From NCBI GenBank assembly GCA_037447605.1, contig CM074805.1, forward strand, positions 3,877,361 to 3,941,360: a DNA stretch of 64,000 nucleotides, read 5' to 3'. The notes below the pieces were generated by a model. It searched no databases. It had not been told where the DNA came from and was given only the letters and a program-made list of their open reading frames with translations. The translations under genes were made by a program, and so were the position numbers. Position 1 is the first letter of the stretch. Every line of letters begins with the position of its first letter. Below, piece after piece: positions 9,140 to 33,768 of this stretch. This DNA comes from Zygnema circumcarinatum SAG 698-1b. Lineage: Eukaryota; Plantae; Zygnematophyceae.

Positions 9140-10571
9140 TCTCACCGGAGGAATTTCCACTTTTATTGTAAGCCTTGTGGCCACAGCACTGCCTATGTGT
9201 ATGTGTCTAGGAGTTGTGCATGCCATTGTTTGCCCCACGCACTTTCCGATCATTGGCCAACCATGCGACCATCTGCGTGTTCGACTCATGCGCTCTAAAC
9301 TCTCGGTACTGTACGGACAGTGGCCTCCAGGGGCCAAAAATGTAAATATTCACAGGCGCGTCACATTTTTTCATTGGAAAAATGAAAAATGAAGACGCGA
9401 CGAGCGCCGTCGACCGCTCGGCCTACGTCCCGTCACACGCAGTTCCATGTTCCGTTCTATGCTGGAAATCGAACTGAGCTGAGATCTGGGACGGATGCGC
9501 CGCATAGAACGGCGCGCCGAAAGCTCCTGTCATGTCCCTGTCAGGGGCTCGCTTGCAGCCTCCGTTCGGGGCATTTCAGGGGGGGCAGAAGCTGCTGTAT
9601 TGCCTTGCCTGACTGTACGTTTTCAGCAGAAGCAGCAGCATTGGAAGGGCTTGGACAGGGACAGGGGTAAGGCTTCGTCGCAGGGTTTTGAGGGTGCGCT
9701 TTTTTCCTGTCTTTAAGGAATTTGAAGTGTTTATGGACTGCTTGCTAGTCTTGCTGCTCAGGTTGCAGGCTGGATTGACTGAAGGAGGTTTGATAAGAAA
9801 GATTGACGGGTGTGTGATGTAGACGGAGCATAATGACAAGCAGAACAGCGGACAAAGTAAACCGCCGTCAACTTGTTGGAGGGCATGAATTAAAAGGGTA
9901 AGGCCGCTAAGGAGATCAGCTGTCAGTAAGGGCTTGTAAATAGTGAGCTTGTTACTTAACGCAATCGAATCTGATTAATTCATAACAACTGAAGGTGAAT
10001 ATGTAGCATTTCATAATTTAGCAAGTCATATGCTTACATAAACCATTTTGACATCAACAGTATCCGCTTATAATCTGAACGCTTAATGCCAGGAGGGAAC
10101 TGTGGCTGCTGATTCACCTGTTGTAAGGATGGCTAGTAGCCATTGCCATGCAACTGTTGCGACAATGATAATTTCGTTGAATTATTACATTATGACTACA
10201 TTATTCCTTTCTCTGATTTGGACGTACAGCTTTGCAGGATTTCCCGTCCACCGCTTTCCTCATCCAATAAAAAAAGAGATAAAAATTTCTGCTGTGCGCA
10301 GGTATAATCTGCCCTCCTTTCAATCGCTGTTGCTTTACACATAGATTTTGCGAATGGGAGGTGTGCAGACTGGCGTGTCATCATCTGATCGGTGCCTTAC
10401 GTATGTGTAATAATTCTCTGTCTCCTATTTTTTTTCGGGAAACACCTCTCCGCACATCGATATACGAACTTGGTTTATGCCAAGAGTTTATTGAATGGAT
10501 ATTCCATTAACAAAGTATCTCAGCAGGAAACAATTCTGCTGGTGCTCTGCCGTATTGCGGTCATGCTTCAG

Positions 10572-11750
10572 GGTTATACCAATTTCATGACGAATCCAAT
10601 CTTCAAGCAAAAAGCAAGAGAGACCGTGGCGAGCTCAGCAGCAATAAGTAACTTCGATGAAGAATGCTCGGCATGTGTAAACTTAAAGAAGGAGCGAGAC
10701 CTCACATCAAAAGGATGGGAATTACAGTCGATGGTCACTAAGTATTTAGAGACCAGGATCACCAAGCTAGAGGCTGAGAATATCAAGCTACAGGCTAAGA
10801 ACAGCAAGTTAGAAGATGAAAACGAATACCTTCGAGAAAAGGCTGAGCTCCTTCCCACTGAACGTGAACAGGACCTGGATCCCCTGGAGAGGAAGCCGAT
10901 CATACTCCCAGCTTTCGACAAGGTACGTTACGATTAGCACAAAGAAGTTGTCAGGGTGTAGCCTTGAGCTGAAGGAACTTCATTGACGAAGTAGAGTGAG
11001 CGTTTGCTTGTGCAGGAAAACAAGCTACCACGTGTTCACGCTCGTACGCGATAACAATTTGTTCTTTGCGTCTTCAAAGAAATTGGTATGAATTTCATAC
11101 AGCTCCACCAACCGGTCTAAAAAATTGTTCAACAACGCTCTCCTCCAGAAAACTCTCGTATGCGTTTTTGCGCATGACCCTGAAACTCTGTGCTCTAACT
11201 CACCTCGCAGGTCGCTTGTAACTGGTCGCTTGCGTGCGCTTTTTGTCACTTTACAAATGCCCGAGATTAAGGTCTGCTCGTTCAGCTTCCCCCTCCTCGA
11301 GCACATGCTCGACCACCCTCAGACACAGGGGGGCATGTTTGGCTCATCACAAGGCTGCCTCCTCTCAGCTGTTGCCAACGGCAGTTCCGTGCTCCTTCCA
11401 AGGTTTCAGATTGCCGATGCGTTGATGGCCAGCGGCACAACACAACCGAGCTTTTCATAGGTGTTCTTTTTGCTATACCTTGCAGAATGCCTCGTCAGAA
11501 TTTCAGATTATCCTTTCTTTTGATAGACGGTTTTTATTGCATAGACTTCGGCAACGAAATGGGAACCGAAATTGACCTGAACGCCCTCCAGAGCAGTCTG
11601 CTTTGCTGAGTTTGAGCTGACATGTGTGTACCGAAATTTTGAGAGTGCAGTAACTAATAAATGCCATGGTGATTCCCTACGAGGGCATTGCAAAAAATGT
11701 GTTCTTTTTGTGGATTGCAACGATGTATTTTTTTTCTCTAAAATGTCGAC
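10572..11750 (+). pseudogene. Probable decayed multi-exon gene with a coiled-coil exon; family unknown
   Basis: A phase-0 exon at 10572-10922 is bounded by AG/GT and encodes CxxC plus a heptad coiled coil (ETRITKLEAENIKLQAKNSKLEDENEYLREK). Phase-compatible downstream exon-like blocks start at 11016, ~11211 and ~11487 but carry in-frame TAA/TGA stops. Confidence 0.35.
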
Positions 11751-12666
11751 TTGATCGAGTCGAAGATGTTCTTATTGGCATTCCTCGTGCTTCACGGTCT
11801 TTTAGAAGTTTGCGCTGTCCGAGCCGAAAGGAGGGCTGGCGGAGGGGAGGGGAAGCCCAAGGGGGCCGCATGCTTCTGCTGATCCTGCAGCACCCTTGGT
11901 ACCCTTGGGACCATCCTTCAGTCGGCGCCTCCTAGAGGATGCAACACCATAGTCGCCGCACGCAAGGGCTTGCCCTGAAAGGCGAAGCAGGCAGCAGCAC
12001 AGGCGCTCTGGCGACGGCGTGTGAGCACTCATCATGGCGTCCGCACTATCTTTCGCGCAGGTGTTGGCGAAGCGTGATGCGAACGAGTGTGGGTGTGGGG
12101 GGGGGGGGGAGTCGCAGCTGTTGGAAATTACCCGACTTGGCTGCGCAAACTCACCTTCCAAATTTCAGATACGGTAGCACTGACAGGATGAATTCATTGC
12201 CTAACCCATAACTAGACCAATCCAGTATCATCCTCCTTCCCTTTTTTTAATTTACCCGCCTCATGTTCAGGGTACTCAAGATGGCGCCTGGTCCCGCTCG
12301 GGCTCTAATGGCCTTGAGCCTTGAGGTCCCCTCCTGCCAGCGCCATGGCCCCATGAGATGGTCGCCATGGCTGCATGCATGCAAGATGGCCCACCCACGA
12401 CAGCCGTCCGATCTCGACCCGGCAGATCCTGGCCGTCGGTGCTCCTCGTAGTTCTCCCGCACGACCTTGTCGGCCCTTCGGCACCCAAGATCGTCCCCGG
12501 CGAAACCGACACGCTCTACCGTCCGTACCACACGGCCCGACGGATCGTTCGGAGTCGCCCCCTCCTCCCTCCTCATATACGGCCGCGTCCGTACACGAGT
12601 TCGTACACGAGTTTGTACTTTTGTACGTTAATTTCGTACAGATTTGCCCGAAAAACGCGATCCCGA

Positions 12667-12759
12667 GTACTGTACAGTACAGCACGCACCGTACGGCAGT
12701 CCGTACGGTCAGTGTGCCCCCTCAGCAGGAGCACTCGCCTCCAGCCGGTGCCACGTGGC
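12667..12759. promoter_or_regulatory. GTAC-rich palindromes, tandem CCGTACGG and a G-box upstream of MNS3
   Basis: GTACTGTACAGTAC at 12667-12680, CCGTACGG at 12689 and 12701, and GCCACGTGGC at 12750-12759, all 150-240 bp upstream of the ATG at 12908. Confidence 0.45.
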
Positions 12760-12907
12760 GTTCCCTCCGCGAGCGGGCGGGAGGGAGGGAGGGAGGGAGG
12801 GAGGGAGGGAGGGAGGGAGGGAGGGAGGAAGGGAGCGAGGGAGCGAGCAGGCGCCGCCCCGGCGGATGGCGCAGCCCTAGCCCTATAGTAGAGTAGAGCG
12901 CGCGATC

Positions 12908-15900
12908 ATGGCGGGGCTGCTGCCCACTGCGCGGGGCGAGGCGGCCTACGACAACGCCAAGGCACGGCGGAAAGGCCGGCTTGCAAAGGTCAGGGGCCGG
13001 CTCTTCGCCTTTCACTACTGTCCAATGCGTTGACGGATGGTTTCAGGGCCCGCTGAACTCAGGGCATAAGCGTACAGGTCGACGTCGAGGCTAAGAGCAG
13101 CATTACTCGTCGAGTGGCTTTATTTAGGTTGTGGTCTATCTTGAGTTGTTTGTTTGTTTGTTTTTTTTTTTTTTTTTTAAGTAAGGTTTCTGGTTTACTG
13201 CAACGGAAGCCTGCAGCTTGAGTATTTAGGTACAGGGCTGTTTTCTGCCTCATATTGTAAGACAAGCGGAGGTTTTCGGATTTTCGACCCGGGACTGTTT
13301 TACTAGGAATATGGAAACATTGTAACCTATTAAGCTTAGCCGAGGGATGATACGGGTTGGAGGCATTTGGGCGCATGTTGAGCATAGTGATGCGCCTATC
13401 GAGACTATATATTTATATGTAGCGCATTTCAATGCTCAACATGAACCCGCATTGAAGTTAGCGGGAACTTTGATCGAACAAGAATTGTTCCAGGTTTACC
13501 AATATTGCCACATTGTTTTGAAGTGCTCAAGGAGAATATATCAACGCTTTGTGGCGGAAATTTCGACTCATAAAAACGTTCATTCATTTTACGTGATTGT
13601 TTTTTTTCTTTTTAGCGTCCTTGCTCTTGCCTACTGAGCATTGTAGGGTTTGAGGTTCGCCTAAACCTCCAGATTAACTAGCAACGAGAGGAGCCAGACT
13701 GAATGCTTTGTGCTTCACCTTCAGGTATTTTTGAAATGTAAATTTTCTATGGATAGTAGCGACGATGAGCTTTAGCATGGGATCTACCCATCGCCACCTG
13801 CTGGCGTCTCTGAACCCTGAGTTTTTTGGCTTCGCAGTTGTTCGTTATTTACAAGCGAAAGTATCCAATCCTCCGGCTCTGCAGCCCCACCTCCCTTCTC
13901 GCGGTATTTGGCATCTTCTGCTTCGTCTACGTGGTGACCGGCCACACGAGTGTGGGAGAGGCTTATAGGAACTCCAAGCATGGCATTGCCATCAATGAGA
14001 GAATATTAAGAGCACGTAATGGATCTGCTCTATTGAAGGGCCAGCCCTTGGAGAAGAAGTTTATAGAAAAAATTGAGGGGACTTCACCAAAGGTAGAAGA
14101 AGTTAACGCTGGAGGTCATGACTCGGCACTTACTTCTGATCCTGTAGAAAAGAAGGCGAAGAAAGAATCTGCCGTTAATGGCGAAAAAGTGATCCGGGGG
14201 GATCGGGAGAACTATGAAGACGATGAGTCTGACGCGAAGGTGAATGCGGAAGGAGGTTCGACGTTAGGTCTGACAGATCCTTTTGGAGATGATGTTGGCG
14301 AAATAGATAAGGACGGACAGGACATTATAGTTCAAGTAGACGAAGGGAAAAAGTCTGAAAAGAACAGAGGTAAAGCGAAATCAGTCGACAATTCCCCCGA
14401 GGGGGAGACTGGTAGTATGAAGGAAAAAGCAAACAAGCAGAGCGTTGAAGGAGGTGACTCAACGGACGGAGGTGATGCAGATGCTGGTGTGGGAGCGGAG
14501 GAAACTGAGGAATTCAAGAGTATAGACGAGTCTGAATCGAAAGTGAGTGTTTCCAACGTACGGCAGGAAGAGGGAGTAGGCGGGGATAGACAAGAGAAAG
14601 GAGGTAAGGGTGCAGATGAGCATGGCAGCAATAAAAAGAGGCAGCGACACTTGATTGGGGGTTCCGATTCAGATGAGGCAGACAGTGCAGACGGAGAGGT
14701 GCTAAGGGAAGGGGAAACGGGTGATGGGAGTGATGTTGAAGCTGAAGTGAGGCAACGCGAAGCAAAAAGTGATGGACGTAAAATTGGCGGCCATTTGAAT
14801 CTGCCTCGGCGTGATGAGCATTCACTTGAAGCGAGGAAACAGTTCGGAGATGTGCAAAATGCTGGCAATGTCTCTTTGGGCGATGGGAAAGGTATCCACC
14901 ATTTGAGGGATCCTCAGACTGTGGAACACAGAAAGATTGTGCCCAGGACGCACTGGGAGAGGCTGGAAGCAAGAAAAGGACATAATGTGCTGAATGTTCT
15001 AGACAAACTGCAGGTTAAAGACATGTTGAAAAACCATTCTAGGAAAGTTGAAGGAAAGGGTGCAGGGAGTGAGGGACATCATGAAACAGATAGACTAGTA
15101 CACAGTGATGCTAGCGATAGTTTGCTGCAAGGTGGGATAGATGGGGCTGTGAAGAAGGATAGTCCTCACGTTAATGCTGTAAATTTGGAAGGTATGGAAG
15201 GGCTTGATGTTAACGTAGAAGGGTTAGCAGACGAGAAGGACCGAACGGTGCATGACCCGCGGCTGTCAAAGGACCGGCAACAAGCTGTTGTTTCTGCCTT
15301 TAGACATGCGTGGAATGGGTACAAGAGCTATGCTATGGGGTTTGATGAGCTCAAACCAGTGAGCCGCAGTGGTGCGAACAACTTAGGGGGGCTTGGGGCT
15401 ACCATTATTGATGCTCTGGATACAGCCTTGATCATGGGCCAAGGCGAAATAGTTGAAGAAGCTGGGAAATGGGTCCAGAATGAGCTGCAATATCACATCG
15501 CGAATGCGGGACAGGTGAATTTGTTTGAAACAACTATCAGGATTTTGGGAGGCCTATTGAGTGCATTCTATTTGAGTGGAGGGAGGCCAACAGGTATGGT
15601 TGGGGGTTGGGAGCACCGGTGGGGCCCACTTCCAGAAGTGTACTTACAGCGAGCTCAAGACTTGGGAGACCGTCTCCTTGAAGCCTTCAAGCAGAGCAAG
15701 ACTGCGATTCCACTCTCCGATGTCGTACTCTCAAGCAGGTGGGGCCCTTGTACCTCCCTTCTTTGCTTTCAATGGGAGAGAAACCACTTCTGAGATTCAT
15801 TTCGGCAGTCATAGCACTGCTGGAGAGATTGGTCGGTACAAACAAAGTGACCCAAAATAGTAGCCCTTTCCTACATCTGAAACTGCCCCTTTGGCTCACA

Positions 15901-26908: not shown

Positions 26909-26916
26909 GCGCCAAA
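26909..26916 (-). promoter_or_regulatory. E2F-type site TTTGGCGC in the divergent RPN11/DEL promoter
   Basis: Exact match to the TTTSSCGS consensus ~215 bp upstream of the first ATG of the DEL gene. Confidence 0.4.
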
Positions 26917-27130
26917 CCCGCGAGTTTACTTTCCAGGACGGCTCGGCGACTCGTACAAAACCAATCCTGGACATGCATCGCACGTGTGAATCTCCACTCT
27001 GCCCGGAAGGTCTCTGAGGGAGGGAGGGAGGAGAGTGGAGGAGCGGAGAGGGGAGGGAGGAGAGAGGGGGGGAGAGAGGGCGGTTGAGGTTGACGGCTTG
27101 CATGGGGTGAAGGAGATGGCCTGTTGAAAT

Positions 27131-30100
27131 ATGCCGGACGAGTCAGTGGGCGCTTGGCGCCGAGGACGCTGGCTCGGGGGAGAGGGAGAGGAAATGGACG
27201 CGTGTGATGTTGCGCTAGTTGCAAATACGTTGAATACGGGAGACAAATCGTTGCTTTCTTGTTACGCGGGCAGAGAAGACGACATACTGTGTCCTATTGC
27301 CACGAAAAATGCATTCTCACCGAACGAGGACGAAGTTAGGTCAGTTGGAATGACAACTGTACCATGTCTGTCTGATTAACATCTGTTTATTCTGTCTAGA
27401 CATGACGCTTTTTCAACAGGCTGAAGCAAAGAGGTAATATGTCAGCTCGCTCAGTCCTTACTGTTTAACTCGCTTGACCTTTCGAGCATTTAAAAAACCC
27501 TTTTGTTGTATGTCAATGCTCCGAATCCTCGTAAGTTCTTGAGCAACTTGGATCAACTGGAGATCGCTTGTCTAAAGAAGGATTCACGTTGGGCTGTTCA
27601 CAGGGCCTACAAACTTGGCAGAGGAAAATGTTCTTATAATCAAATTGAACTGCTCCTTTTGGAATCAAACGGCAAGGTCTCGAACTTGCTGGGAATCGCT
27701 GAAGCTGCAGAAGTTGCAGTGGGTGGTGATGTGGACGACAGCCTCTTGGACAGTTCCTTGCGGTACAACCTTCGCTTCAACGATGGTCGTCAGATTAGGC
27801 TATACTTATTTCTGGTTTATGCAGTTCCACATGGACTCACATATGGAAAAGACCAATGTCCAGAGTACCACTGGGTACCAGTCACCAGACATAGGTGTCA
27901 AAGAGGCTGCAAGGGCCCTGTTCTTCGAGGTCTGCAGAGGTTTGGCAAGTTGCCAAAACGAATCGCTGTTTCGCCAGGACCATGCGACGGGGGCTGGAAA
28001 GAGACAAGCAAATTGTATGTTGCAATTGATGAGGCAAGCAACCATGTCCGCCAGGGCTGTGGAACTACACACTTCAGGCTGCTGGTGGCTGCCTATACGG
28101 ACGACCAGGTCCTTCTTGGTAGTGCTGTTTCCCCCAGCATCAAGGTTGTTGCAAACAACGACGTGCCTGGCGGGTCAGCAAACTTCCAAATCCACTGTAA
28201 CATAAGCGGTGGGTCCTTGATCTGCTGGCCTGTATGAGCTGGGACGAATTGCGTGCCACAATCTGACAGGAGCTGTTTTATCTGGAAAATTGATTCTCAA
28301 TTGCGTTAGTGCTTTTCGCTTGCCTTTCTTGTTTGCACTCTAAATTATTTGCATTGCATTGCAAAGAACAGTGCGTGTATATGTCTATTAGTCCATTGCA
28401 CCTCCTTCCCACCCGCCGGAGCAGGAGAAAAGGATGGAGCTGTGGAAGGTGGTACTGTATCAAGGACAATTTTTCCCCACTGCATAAGTTAACAATAGTA
28501 CCGGTCAAGGTCGCAATCTTGTAGATTGCTCCATTTCTTGTTTTCATTTCCGTCATGTCCGTTTTCTGCCATGCAGAGGTGCCGATGAGCACTGCGGCTC
28601 CAAGACAACCTGAACCCTCTTTCGTTCAAAGAAGCACAAAACGAGGTGTACAGTCTGGTATCACAAGTCACAAGATCCTCCAGGTACTTGTCGATGTATA
28701 TTCAATTTTACGACCATTTCTTTGTTTTGACTTGTGCTATCATGGAATTTTCGCGTACCGTCCCCTTCCATGTTGTATGCGGCAGTCATCGTCGTCTGAA
28801 TGTAACTACTGCAAACTATACGATCGGCCTGTTTTTTTCTGCAAACATGGAAACTGCATTAGCATGCACTCACTAGTCATGATAATATACGGAGAATGTT
28901 GTTTGTGTTTGTGTGTTATTGCAGACAGGTAGTGGTGTACAGACTGCGGGAGGGCCATCGTCACACCTGCCATCATCTTTTGTAGCTGCAGCGCAGTCTG
29001 ATTTTACAGCCGCTTCTGCTAAGCCTCTCACAGAAGTGAGGGCAAATGCATCTTTAGATCCAGTCGTGTTCCAAATTGGCGATGTAATAATGGAAAGCTC
29101 AGATAGGCCAAGATTGGTACTTAAAGAGGAACTAGACGACACCAGCCCGAGCTCTTCTCCTTCATCTGAAGACTATTCAGAGTTCTTAAGTGAAGGGACT
29201 TCGTTATCAGAAGAACGAGAGGAGACCTCGTCACAGTCAACAAGATCTATTATCAGCCTTGATGAGGTGAACATTTTGGCAAATTGCTAGTTTACTACTA
29301 GTTAGTACTAATTTTGTTGATCCGGAGTTATGTAACATGAGCATCCTTTTGAAAGCAGAATTTGGCTTTGAGCAATGCTTGGAGCAACGGTTTACTCCCC
29401 ATTATTTATGCTCGATAGTTGTTCGCCTAACCGGCTGGAAGTGGGATTCAAAACAGGATAAGGACCCTTATTGTCGAAAGGACCACTCTTTATCAACTTC
29501 ATGTCAGCGGTATGTGTGGAGGGGAAGTTGTGAAATCGGCCATCAAAATGCTTTGCTCTATACGGTGATGTTCGTTCTTTGATGGCTTTAGGGAGACTAT
29601 TGGAAATGCCTCCTCCTATCTTGGTTTTTTCAGTTTTTGATTTTATTCATATAATTTGGTGCTTGTGCAGCCTTTTTGAAGCCTACGCGGCCAAAAGAGG
29701 AGCGGTCTTTCAACTGGAGAGTCTTGCAGCTTCATTAGGTATTGGCACTGAATCACATTTGTTCCTGAATGACTGAGAAGCATCTTTGTCTGCGTCGCCA
29801 TCTTCTCATCTTAGTTGCTGACAAGACTCGTGCTTTGAGTCAAGTCGTTCAAGCCACTAAGCAAGCCTGTGAGTTATGTGAGGCTTAAACGTGTATGTGA
29901 AATTGAGTGAAATAGGTGTGGTTGTGCGGTTTTTCAGTATTTGATGACTCTGGGAACTGCTTGTGGCTCTTTCTTTTGAGGTGAAGATACTTCAAAACGC
30001 CGCGTCTACGACATAGTCAACGTTCTAGAAAGCATTCAGGTGGTTCGGCGACGAGCAAAAAACGAATATGTCTGGGTTGGACATGGGAGGGTTGCTAAAA

Positions 30101-33100
30101 CTCTTGCAATACTCAAGGTGACATTCTCTAAACGATCATTTATTGAACAATTTCTTGATGCTAAGTATTGTATGCATTGGGTCTTGGCCGTGTGTTCTCC
30201 TCCGAGTGAGTTGAGATTTTTGCGTGGCTTGGCAGTGCCAGTGCTTTGTAAGTTCAGTTGAAATCTTCCATTTCCTGTGAACTGAAGCGATTACTAGTGT
30301 AGGTCGTAAGAGTAGCCATTTCGAAGAACAATGTGGAGGGAGGACGCTGAAAAGCGAAGACTGTTCTTGTTGGGCAGGGAAGGATCACTAGTGCTGCTAC
30401 AACTGGAGGTAGATATGTGGCCGGTTCTGCGACTCTGAGAGGTAAGGCACTGATATCATGCATTTTTGCTCGCTGCAAGTTTAATGATTGTGTGTCGACA
30501 ACTGTGTCGTAGTTTTTCTTAAAGCTGTAACTAGATGCATGGGTTCACGCAGCCTCTGTAAACACTGCTATCTGCTTTGTTTATCTTTCTATTACGGTCC
30601 TCGTTCATCCTTTTGCAGCCAAGGTCTTCTGCTCCATGCTAAGTGGAAGAATAGACTTTTTTCTTATCAGCTACGCTAACCAAATTGGTTACCGCTTCTG
30701 AGTGCTTTGCTGCAGACCCAGGGGATGACAAGTCTTTGCGAGCTTTGAGTGAGAAGTTTGTCCAAATTTTCCTAGTCAATGAGGTAAGGCTGCCTTCTTA
30801 TTCGGTTTGTACTTTCAGATATTTTCAGTTTGCATACTCCAATGACCGGAACTCGAGTTATTTCTGTAGACCACTGACTAATGTATAGAAACCGGATTTT
30901 TCGGTTTGCAGAAAGTTTGCATTGGACAACATTGGCTCCTTTAAACCTGAAAGCGAAATAATAATCCTAATTTTGTAGATGGTGAGGTTTCAGATTCATG
31001 CTTGCGTACTTTTGACAATTGCAGAGTCGACCAATTGCATGGGAATTTGCACTGAAGAATGTGTTGGAGGTTGGAAATCACCAACACAATATGCACCGTG
31101 AGTGAAATTTCCATTCGACACCCTCGTTTAGCACAACACAAAAGCTAATGTTTTCTGTAAACCGGACAGGAAGCTGTCTTGATGAATAAGATATGATAGC
31201 TCCAAGTGCGATACTGACTGCTATGTACATGTTGCTATTGAATGACCGTAGGGAGAGGCCGACGCCTGTACGATGTTGCAAACATTCTGACGTCGATCCA
31301 TTTGTTGGAGAAACGGTCTCAATGCACGTGGTCCAACGCCACCGCCAAATCCTACTTCCGCTTTCGGGGCTCGAAGGGTGTGAAGGATCACCTCATAGCT
31401 GTTGCTTCTTGTGAGTGCCCACATCCTGTGCCTATCTCACCGCTCGAAGCTTCTGTAATGGCTGTAACATGAGGATGCAGCCGTTGGACGAATGAACTCA
31501 CTTTCTTAGACTTACGGGTTTCGTCAGTTTGAAACCATAGATTTGAGGTAATCTAAGGCAGGCTGATCCATAGTTAACACTACTGTGTCTCTGTGTGTTA
31601 TGCCCCTACACATCACATTATTCGTCCTGGTTTCTTCCTCCTCGGAAATTTCATCATCATCCAATTGTATCTCCGTTCAGGTCGAGCATGCCGTTTCATA
31701 CCCCCATGGAAGACCCTTCGAGCGAGGATTTCCAAAACATCCAAAGTGCTCTTCAATCTTAACCAACCCCTTTCCCCGGCGAAAAGGAGCAGAGAGGAGG
31801 AGAACAGCCCCTCCCCAAAAGGCGTGCAAGTCGCCAGAGTGAGGCTCAGTCCTCCGAAAGTTCCGCCCGGCACCTCGTCTTCTGTCACCTTTTCAGAACA
31901 TCACATTGGCAGACTTACCACTACCTCGAGTTCAGGGAAAGAAGAGAGGGACCTTATGGACACAGCGAGTGCAGAGCTAGACTCAAGCAAAAGGACAACG
32001 TCTCGTAAAAGGCTGCCTTTACAGGCAGTGGACAATTTGCCAAGACCTTCAAAAGTGCAGAAAGTAAACACATTCAACAGGTCAGTAACAGGTGGAATTG
32101 CAGAGAAGCCAAGTGAAAAACAAGTCTCAAATTGTTCGAACAGCATCAGGCCGTTGCCCCATTTGGTGCAGGGCACACCACAGTTTTCAACGGGAGAGTT
32201 TGCTGATCAGATTAGGCTTTACCGGTCAGATCGTGCTGAAAGATGGCCTATTGACTCTGTATTGACCGGAGAGCAGAACTTGACACCTGTCAAAGGGAAT
32301 TTGAGCGAATGTACGCCTATGTCTGTGAGGCCGGGGAAGCCGATAAGTAGTCGCCAGGTAATGTTGGCTAAGGTAGAGGAACCTATGGACTGGGAAGCCG
32401 ATAGTTTGAGGATGAAGGCAGCAGTAATTGATGAAAGCAGTGAGAAGGAAAGCGGAGGTAAAGTACAAATCGCCAGATTTGAGTCTCCAGTTACTCCCAC
32501 CTACGCATCGACTGAGAAGGCATCGGGGATTTCGAGGTTTGGCATGTTTGAGGGCAGGTCCGAAGAGAGACCAAAGGAAGGAGAGTCTCGAAGGGAGCAA
32601 CATCTGCGAAATTGTTTTCCAGAATGGCATTCTCCAGAGCGATCAGGAGGGAGGCATGGAAACTCTCCTACTGCTCAGGATGCAGCTGCGACTAGTAACT
32701 ACGTGATGCATAGTCCTGCTACTCCTTCCTTGAGTGTCCTTCGTCCAGGATTTGCAACTGTACAGAACCACAACAGCTCGCCTGAATCTATTACGCCGCA
32801 GTCAAGACCAAGTGGGGTCTATGTGCATAACAAAGTGCTCGTCGACCCATTGAGCTGTCTTCCTTATCTCTTCACATCCGACCAGTTAGCACAAATCCAG
32901 GCCCAAAACCCATGTAAGTTTTACATCTCCACGGTTGGGCTGTTTTGCAGATGTATGTATGTAAATTGGAAACTGAGGCTTAACTCACATATGTTTTACT
33001 GAGTCCAAGATTTGGGGCCTCCTTTAACCTTTGGGATGCTTCCCAGTATAATGCTTAGTTATGGTGAGAAGATTTTGTATGATAGCCTTCTTGATTCTTA

Positions 33101-33768
33101 AAGCTGACAGTCCCCTTCATTGGTGGCCCTGCGCAGCATTTCTTTCTCGTTACGTGGAATGCTCGCGCCTGCTATTGGAGCTCTGTCACAGTCAGGCTTG
33201 TCCGGAAAAGCAACAAAGTGCAGCTGCTGGAAATTCGCAGCTCTTTCATCCCACTCCCCAGTCTCCTCAAAGTGGGTTCTGCCTCGTAGAAGCTTTAACT
33301 CAGCCGAAGGAGAGTCTTCACGCACCTAGTACGACCATCGGTCGCCCTCAAAGCTCGCACTTGCAGGAAGAGGCGGTGCAGGGAGCTGGGGCATCCACGC
33401 AAGCTGCCATCGGGTTTGTGCCATATGTGCCACCCCATAGAGACACAACCTGTACAGTTCGAGAAGTGAAGGACAAGGGCGTGATGTTATCCCCAAGGAA
33501 GCCTGACAAGGGAGATGGTGCCTGTCAGAGTCCTCTAGAGAATGCTTTTGACCTTGCTCTTGTTCATCGGATGGAAGCAACCACGGTGCCAGGAAGAGTT
33601 GGTTTCACTCCCTATCTTTCTCCGTGGAGAGATGCAACTTGCAGCGCTCGTAGAGTTGAAGACGTATGCAGTTTATCTCTCCAAGGAGTGGCAGTGGTGC
33701 CTGCCAAACAAATGGATTCTGGCGGCGAGGGAGATATGGCAACCGCATATTTGTCTCCGCCATCGTAG
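27131..33768 (+). CDS. DEL: Atypical E2F (DEL / E2F7-8-like, two winged-helix DBDs) with an extra N-terminal domain; ~1220 aa if all exons join
   Basis: Proposed exons 27131-27339, 27604-28208, 28577-28645, 28929-29266, 29457-29509, 29671-29738, 29981-30117, 30378-30408, 30716-30783, 31025-31097, 31252-31410, 31681-32913 and 33137-33768, all GT-AG and phase-compatible. DBD1: YCRKDHSL..KRRVYDIVNVLESI..KNEYVWVG. DBD2: DKSLRALSEKFVQIF..GRRLYDVANILTSIHLLEK. The DEL core is confident; the 5' exons and small exons are less so. Confidence 0.8.

Follow-up and report, generated by a model that had tools for sequence, protein, structure and literature searches.

An atypical E2F gene of the alga Zygnema circumcarinatum encodes a conserved N-terminal domain with a predicted EBF-like fold

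Introduction

Atypical E2F transcription factors, namely, the DEL proteins of plants and E2F7/E2F8 of animals, bind E2F sites without a DP partner and repress cell-cycle genes. They act as central brakes on genes of S-phase and of the endocycle, and textbooks depict them as two E2F domains with little else. A survey of plant cell-cycle genes lists DELs, two of them in Marchantia, and makes no mention of an extra domain (PMC13237563). COE genes, which encode the EBF-type DNA-binding domain (DBD), are reported to be absent outside Metazoa, with none in plants, fungi, or protists, and their DBD is described as being of unexplained origin (PMC2394523). Here, we describe a gene located within a stretch of 64,000 nucleotides (nt) of Zygnema circumcarinatum SAG 698-1b (assembly GCA_037447605.1, contig CM074805.1, positions 3,877,361 to 3,941,360 of the forward strand; hereafter, the window, to which all positions refer unless stated otherwise). 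Its product joins two E2F winged-helix domains to an N-terminal domain (hereafter, the N-domain) that is predicted to adopt an immunoglobulin (Ig)-like fold closest to that of EBF1 and that may act as a third DNA-binding module.

Results

RNA contigs join the N-domain to the E2F exons in one reading frame

Positions 27131-33768 (+) form one expressed multi-exon gene, with its ATG at 27131 and its stop codon at 33766-33768. A computed check of the frame, length, and stops of the joined exons returned an uninterrupted open reading frame (ORF) of 1,247 codons in 13 exons with no internal stop, and all 12 introns are of the GT-AG type. Six public sequencing runs from this organism, drawn from three studies, contain 52-73% of the words sampled from the stretch, a share that approximates what the exons alone would occupy. 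Four of these runs (X1, X2, X3, and X5) were mapped as contigs on window positions 26950-32949 (6,000 letters); such contigs are uninformative on transcript ends and isoform ratios. X1 yielded a single spliced contig of 4,048 nt that covers the exon chain 27089-32913 in 12 exons, the first two spanning 27089-27339 and 27604-28208 and the other ten having the boundaries of exons 3-12 in Table 1; its loose end past 32913 is the sequence beginning at 33137 (i.e., exon 13). The joints of this contig were found again in X2, X3, and X5, with the exception of 27339/27604, which is not present in X5, where intron 1 is kept. The joint that links the N-domain exon to the remainder of the gene (28208/28577) was observed in all four runs at a depth equal to that of the exons. 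As the contigs are spliced at twelve GT-AG introns, they can only originate from RNA. These data demonstrate that the fusion of the N-domain to the E2F domains is real, which we regard as practically certain.

An initial annotation of this DNA had proposed that exon 27604-28208 encodes a segment of ~200 amino acids (aa) that can be spliced in frame to the E2F exons. Both proposals were borne out: the exon, which is part of ORF 27503-28237, codes for a segment of 201 aa (window positions 27605-28207, +) that is present in the spliced contigs, and the fusion is found in spliced contigs from three studies as one ORF of 1,247 aa. Two of the three proposed junctions (28208/28577 and 29266/29457) are those used by the transcripts, whereas the third (28645/28929), albeit canonical and in frame, is unused; transcripts instead employ 28683/28925, which adds 14 codons. 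The proposed gene model also had to be amended by an extra 64-nt exon (30378-30441) between the E2F domains.

The E2F region belongs to the DEL/E2F7-8 type

Pfam was searched with the translation of each exon separately (E ≤ 1). E2F_TDP (PF02319) was detected in exon translations 29980-30117 (E 6.9e-13) and 31251-31409 (E 5.7e-7), with a weak match to the start of the second copy in 30718-30783 (E 0.043). RRxYD is kept in both E2F domains, the first reading RRVYD (aa 466) and the second RRLYD (aa 577), consistent with the two winged helices that had been called from the sequence. Neither E2F_CC-MB (dimerization/marked box) nor any other Pfam family was found in any exon translation at this threshold, including those of the C-terminal exons, the linker exons, and the N-terminal segment. 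By its domain content, i.e., two E2F_TDP copies and no dimerization/marked-box domain, the encoded protein is thus an atypical E2F of the DEL/E2F7-8 type.

In this respect, the protein resembles Arabidopsis DEL1/E2Fe, DEL2, and DEL3, as well as animal E2F7 and E2F8, with two tandem E2F_TDP domains, each carrying RRxYD, and no detected CC-MB. Unlike those proteins, it has ~420 extra N-terminal residues, which include the conserved 200-aa, putatively EBF-like sandwich, and a C-terminal tail of ~620 aa. Some 150 mostly acidic linker residues lie between the N-domain and the E2F pair. To our knowledge, the Arabidopsis DELs (~400 aa) have no such N-terminal domain.

The N-domain belongs to an unnamed family of green plants

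We found no match to the N-domain in Pfam, NCBIfam, PDB sequences, or an ESM Atlas feature search. A word-index protein search returned 16 relatives with E values between 1e-61 and 1e-12, all of them devoid of Pfam domains, and a profile search of 1.84 billion representatives returned 307 at E ≤ 1e-3, of which 164 also pass E ≤ 1e-10 and 72 pass E ≤ 1e-30. The best matches of the window N-domain are from Mesotaenium (55%) and Closterium (54%). Members of the family are labeled hypothetical, uncharacterized, or at most "E2F/DP winged-helix domain-containing." One candidate of the profile search (P0114; 842 aa, 14 matched stretches) proved to be a translated tandem repeat of ~60 aa with a cluster mate of 3,150 aa and was discarded as a false positive.

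Alignment of 43 full-length N-domains revealed 15 invariant positions (domain numbering), namely, W90, R95, C98, C102, R112, K132, D142, E143, H147, R158, N184, N185, D186, P188, and G190. The conserved blocks read AYKLGKxKxSYNQ, LVY, W..V.R..C.KGC.GP...IQRFGK, K....LY.SIDEA..H, FRLL, and S.PIRVLANNDVP.GAA. The family is basic in character: the median isoelectric point is 9.0, the median net charge is +6, and 14 columns are Lys or Arg in at least 80% of members. The N-domain belongs to an ancient, unnamed Viridiplantae family.

Conserved Cys/His columns in the alignment are three only, i.e., C98, C102, and H147 (43/43). More specifically, the family carries, about midway along the domain, a C-x3-C pair (C98, C102), together with an invariant D-E-x-x-x-H helix (D142, E143, H147), which makes a Cys2-His-carboxylate metal site a reasonable guess. 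The stretch HRCQRGC had been taken for a possible zinc knuckle: its two cysteines, C98 and C102, are indeed invariant, whereas the preceding His (His 94 of the window protein) is variable across the family, such that this is not the COE motif H-x3-C-x2-C-x5-C.

Structure models place the N-domain closest to the DBD of EBF1

AlphaFold2 models of the N-domain were built from 15 sequences (predicted local distance difference test [pLDDT] 78.8) and from 43 sequences (pLDDT 86.3, predicted template modeling score 0.83). The prediction shows an all-beta sandwich that also contains two short helices and two disordered loops. When compared with the PDB by Foldseek, the first model matched EBF1 best, followed by p53/p73 (E 0.012-0.09), and the best eight matches of the better model were all EBF1 (E 2.2e-3 to 1.4e-2, probability 0.89-0.98). 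Consistently, VIA-align searches of 48,161 representatives with both models ranked the EBF1 DBD first, at Z 8.4 each over 134-138 residues (root-mean-square deviation 3.4-4.0; next matches at 5.2 and 5.8), a score to be read against best Z values of 7-8, which are common for models without a true match. In a second look with the better model, four EBF1 entries scored Z 8.4-8.6. The EBF1 alignments comprise 133-140 residues (model 7-189 on chain 63-242) at 15-16% identity, and the lead of EBF1 over the next match is at least 2.6 Z units.

Among the fold matches, DNA-binding members are clearly overrepresented. The DBDs of the Grainyhead/CP2, CEP-1/p53/p63, velvet, and Rel/NFAT groups scored Z 3.8-4.9, interspersed with unrelated sandwiches; p53, CEP-1, Grhl, CP2c, VosA-VelB, and RelA reached Z 4.5-4.9 over 94-118 residues, which is the same range as that of unrelated sandwiches. 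The N-domain may resemble these DBDs in its predicted beta-sandwich topology, with no family-specific motifs in common. An Atlas fold search returned only the chlorophyte cluster of the N-domain family itself. Since best Z values of 7-8 are common without a true match, we treat the EBF assignment as a moderate call made by two methods, and not as proof of homology; as judged from the models, an EBF-like fold is likely.

The initial annotation had called an Ig-fold DBD of the p53/NDT80/COE kind. That call stands with regard to the predicted fold, which is closest to COE/EBF and then to the p53 type; it does not extend to the sequence, which matches neither COE1_DBD, nor any Pfam family, nor EBF in the PDB. 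A likeness to NDT80/MYRF was not recovered, given that no such chain ranks in the top 50 rows of the fold searches and that there is no Pfam match either. The EBF1/COE DBD (PDB 3LYR, 3MLN, 3MLO, and 3MLP) is the best structural match in two independent approaches (VIA and Foldseek), and both domains are basic. The invariant Cys pair of the N-domain lies near the domain middle, at roughly the position of the zinc knuckle in EBF1, and, by the reading of that annotation, the C-terminal strands may end in a similar way. In contrast to EBF1/COE, the N-domain shows an identity of only 15-16%, no hidden Markov model (HMM) match, a C-x3-C pair with a distant His, and no IPT/TIG or HLH domain.

The N-domain/E2F architecture extends from green algae to a conifer

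N-domains were found in streptophyte algae (Mesotaenium endlicherianum, Closterium, and Chara braunii), liverworts (Riccia fluitans, R. sorocarpa, and Calypogeia fissa), mosses (Sphagnum magellanicum, Physcomitrium patens, and Ceratodon purpureus), vascular plants (Selaginella, Diphasiastrum, Adiantum, and Cryptomeria japonica), and chlorophytes (Ostreococcus, Pycnococcus/Pseudoscourfieldia, Picochlorum, Trebouxia, Micractinium, Myrmecia, and Apatococcus), a span from prasinophytes to a conifer. The expectation that the fold would not be typical of green plants is thus overturned, with the qualification that none was seen in angiosperms. PF02319 was found downstream of the N-domain in every long streptophyte member scanned (i.e., Mesotaenium, Closterium, Chara, R. 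fluitans, Calypogeia, Sphagnum, Physcomitrium, Ceratodon, Diphasiastrum, Adiantum, and Cryptomeria), such that the co-occurrence of both domains in one protein, which the initial annotation had suggested looking for, is confirmed.

Three chlorophyte loci are likewise linked, with E2F sequence 1.5-2 kb downstream of the N-domain on the same strand. Contig L001 carries the N-domain at 10283-11181 and an E2F region (RKDHSL...RRRLYDVMNVLE...) at ~12800-13400 on the same strand; L004/L005 carry the N-domain at 10235-11119 and E2F at 12993-13706 within ORF 11463-14579 (positions of the respective contigs); and in assembly GCA_041447055.1, an E2F_TDP-matching product lies 1.5 kb downstream of the N-domain on the same strand. 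A further locus, L002, has an N-domain and no convincing E2F sequence downstream, and the contig of L003, the closest metagenomic relative, ends soon after the N-domain. Linkage in both chlorophyte loci and streptophytes indicates that the N-domain and the E2F domains were probably already associated before chlorophytes and streptophytes diverged.

The Cryptomeria domain is most closely related to bryophyte sequences (~61% identity). No angiosperm N-domain protein turned up in our searches, including a query with the Cryptomeria domain against 5.8 billion clusters (length band 433-1379 aa), and the N-domain seems, from these comparisons, to be missing from flowering plants.

L001 (4500-20600) and L004 (4300-17800) also have a gene order in common, namely, PAP_fibrillin, F-box, TsaD, the N-domain/E2F gene, ankyrin, and RRM. 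In L001, HPAT and aldehyde dehydrogenase come next; L002 (13000-16400) has these two genes and RRM in common with L001.

Further features of the locus

The coordinates of the gene are collected in Table 1.

Table 1. Features of the atypical E2F gene and its transcripts, in window coordinates
Feature	Coordinates	Strand	Evidence
5' untranslated region (UTR), transcript start zone	27056-27130	+	contig starts at 27056 (X3), 27080 (X5), and 27089 (X1)
ATGs of two tiny upstream ORFs in the 5' UTR	27102, 27116	+	
Coding exon 1, with the start codon; acidic leader of 69 aa (net charge -8)	27131-27339	+	joint 27339/27604, GT-AG, in X1, X2, and X3
Alternative 5' exon, minor form, in-frame ATG 27402 (MTLFQQAEAKR-AYKLG...)	27402-27433	+	joint 27433/27604
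Exon 2: conserved N-terminal domain, predicted EBF-like Ig fold, aa 71-271	27604-28208	+	AlphaFold2, family alignment, transcript joints
Exon 3: short basic linker	28577-28683	+	joints 28208/28577 and 28683/28925 in 4/4 runs
Exon 4: probably disordered acidic linker rich in Ser, Glu, and Asp (net charge -13)	28925-29266	+	joints, composition, no Pfam family
Exons 5-7 (29457-29509, 29671-29738, 29987-30117): first E2F winged-helix DBD, RRVYD	29457-30117	+	Pfam, joints in four runs
Exon 8: 21-aa linker separating the two E2F domains, 64 nt	30378-30441	+	joints 30117/30378 and 30441/30716 in four runs
Exons 9-11 (30716-30783, 31025-31097, 31252-31410): second E2F winged-helix DBD, RRLYD	30716-31410	+	Pfam, joints
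Exons 12-13 (31681-32913, 33137-33768): C-terminal region of ~620 aa, stop 33766-33768	31681-33768	+	contig loose end

Minor forms were seen among the contigs. The joint of the alternative 5' mini-exon occurs only in X3, at a depth of 12, and the main form skips this exon; translation from its ATG would yield a protein beginning 11 residues ahead of the conserved domain, like many relatives. Intron 1 (27340-27603) is retained in the main contig of X5 and in one X2 contig, in which case the frame opened at 27131 would end after 82 codons. X3 alone shows a GT..AG joint within window positions 32077-32555 that skips 477 nt (159 codons, in frame) of the large C-terminal exon and may represent an alternative internal intron in the disordered tail. 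Residues ~970-1035 of that tail (exon 31681-32913) are 38% identical over ~65 aa to residues 933-1001 of a Closterium homologue (P0025), a weak match (E 4e-4) that hints at a conserved C-terminal motif in zygnematophyte proteins.

A consensus E2F site (TTTGGCGC) is present at 26909-26916 (-), ~150 nt upstream of the transcript start. E2F control or autoregulation is known for E2F7/8 and DEL1, and an upstream site would fit. The E2F consensus is not enriched in the window (8 found versus 10.5 expected by chance), and because it occurs at chance frequency, we have not used this site as evidence. A GA-rich, purine-only tract at 27016-27085 (+) (GGAGGGAGGGAGGAGAG...GGGGGGGAGAGAGGG) lies exactly where the transcript contigs start and may be a GAGA-type promoter element.

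Discussion

Our literature searches returned no description of the N-domain or of the N-domain/E2F architecture. The gene models are already in public databases, and hence the proteins themselves are not new; what is new is the recognition that a conserved, predicted EBF-like domain marks out a long-DEL architecture in green plants other than the flowering ones.

By analogy with E2F8, the two E2F domains of the Zygnema protein would bind an E2F site (TTTSSCGC type) unaided by a partner. The N-domain, possibly stabilized by a metal site formed by C98, C102, and H147 (with D142 or E143), would serve as a third DNA-contacting module, acting either beside the E2F site or at separate sites. By reading flanking DNA, it could narrow or shift the set of promoters occupied by a repressor-type E2F. 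In favor of this reading are the identity of the best fold matches, which are DNA-binding members, the basic character of the domain with its 14 conserved Lys/Arg columns, and the 15 invariant residues. We hold the reading as a whole, i.e., a fusion gene in which a modeled EBF-like domain acts as a third DNA-binding module, with moderate confidence.

Several observations weigh against this reading. Ig-like sandwiches also mediate protein-protein contacts. The Z score of 8.4 is barely above the background of 7-8, and the Foldseek E value is weak (~2e-3). Neither COE1_DBD nor any other Pfam family was matched by the window domain at E ≤ 1 or by 43 family members at E ≤ 10 (no COE, p53, or NDT80), and the family profile matched no EBF chain among PDB sequences at E ≤ 10, the only hit being a chance match to SNX7 (E 1.1). 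The HCCC knuckle of COE is not found in the N-domain family, and no TIG (IPT) or HLH match to Pfam was obtained with the window gene or with 58 long family members. Furthermore, no E2F match was found in the N-domain gene models of Ostreococcus, Trebouxia, Micractinium, and Picochlorum; queries consisting of an HMM from streptophyte E2F regions and of the L001 E2F region detected none in the gene models of these four genera or of Myrmecia and Apatococcus. A 384-aa N-domain protein of Selaginella has no E2F match, and a 419-aa protein of R. sorocarpa has no match to the E2F queries (no Pfam scan was made of it). Thus, the domain apparently can exist alone, unless these models are incomplete.

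Among the alternatives, the one that survives best accepts the fusion and assigns the N-domain a role other than DNA binding: the sandwich would be a protein-interaction or regulatory module (engaged in partner recruitment, dimerization, or control of the E2F domains) that happens to have its s-type Ig topology in common with EBF and p53. The moderate fold scores (Z 8.4-8.6; Foldseek E ~2e-3), the lack of a COE sequence signature, the fact that the zinc knuckle, which in EBF1 inserts into DNA, is not conserved as such, and the Z values of 5-5.8 attained by other beta-sandwich proteins would all fit such a module. It accounts less well for the finding that the best matches are specifically DNA-binding proteins (EBF1, followed by p53, CEP-1, Grainyhead, CP2, velvet, and Rel), for the strongly basic nature of the domain with its conserved Lys/Arg columns, and for its being part of a transcription factor. 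We view this alternative as possible, at a tentative level clearly below that of the DNA-binding reading.

A second alternative posits two genes, namely, an N-domain protein ending at the stop codon 28235-28237 and a classical DEL starting downstream, an outcome also envisaged in the initial annotation. The stop lies 27 nt past the N-domain exon, contigs of low depth extend over intron 2 (X3 record 12 and X2 record 4), and short N-domain-only proteins are annotated in Selaginella and R. sorocarpa. However, this stop falls inside intron 2 and is spliced out; the 28208/28577 joint is present in all four runs at exon depth, one contig runs through all 13 exons, the ORF is continuous, and annotations from no fewer than 11 streptophyte species show this fusion as well. 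Two separate genes are accordingly very improbable and already contradicted by the transcripts. Still more remote, and likewise contradicted, is the notion of the N-domain as a fortuitous ORF or as an insertion confined to one lineage (e.g., transposon-derived) and lacking any conserved function, which the failure to match Pfam, NCBIfam, PDB sequences, or the ESM Atlas might have suggested and which is at odds with 307 representatives (164 at E ≤ 1e-10), 15 residues invariant across chlorophytes and streptophytes, a confident compact AlphaFold2 model, and a segment that is expressed and spliced.

Going beyond the reading that we favor, of an EBF-like third DNA-binding module, the N-domain might be a genuine homologue, albeit a highly divergent one, of the animal COE/EBF DBD, older than animals, acting as a third sequence-specific reader on DEL-type repressors and lost by angiosperms. 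We consider this stronger proposal speculative and rather unlikely as it stands. If the homology were true, a "metazoan-only" domain would predate animals, and non-flowering plants and green algae would possess a cell-cycle repressor with composite site specificity. Our findings also bear on the origin of the COE DBD, which has been described as animal-only and of unknown origin (PMC2394523).

The family documents a second, older-looking DEL architecture besides the textbook form, extending from prasinophytes to a conifer. Its occurrence in the laboratory moss Physcomitrium and in liverworts makes knockout or domain deletion directly feasible. If the N-domain binds DNA, the choice of E2F sites in most of the green lineage would involve a third reader, one that has been missed because Arabidopsis lacks it.

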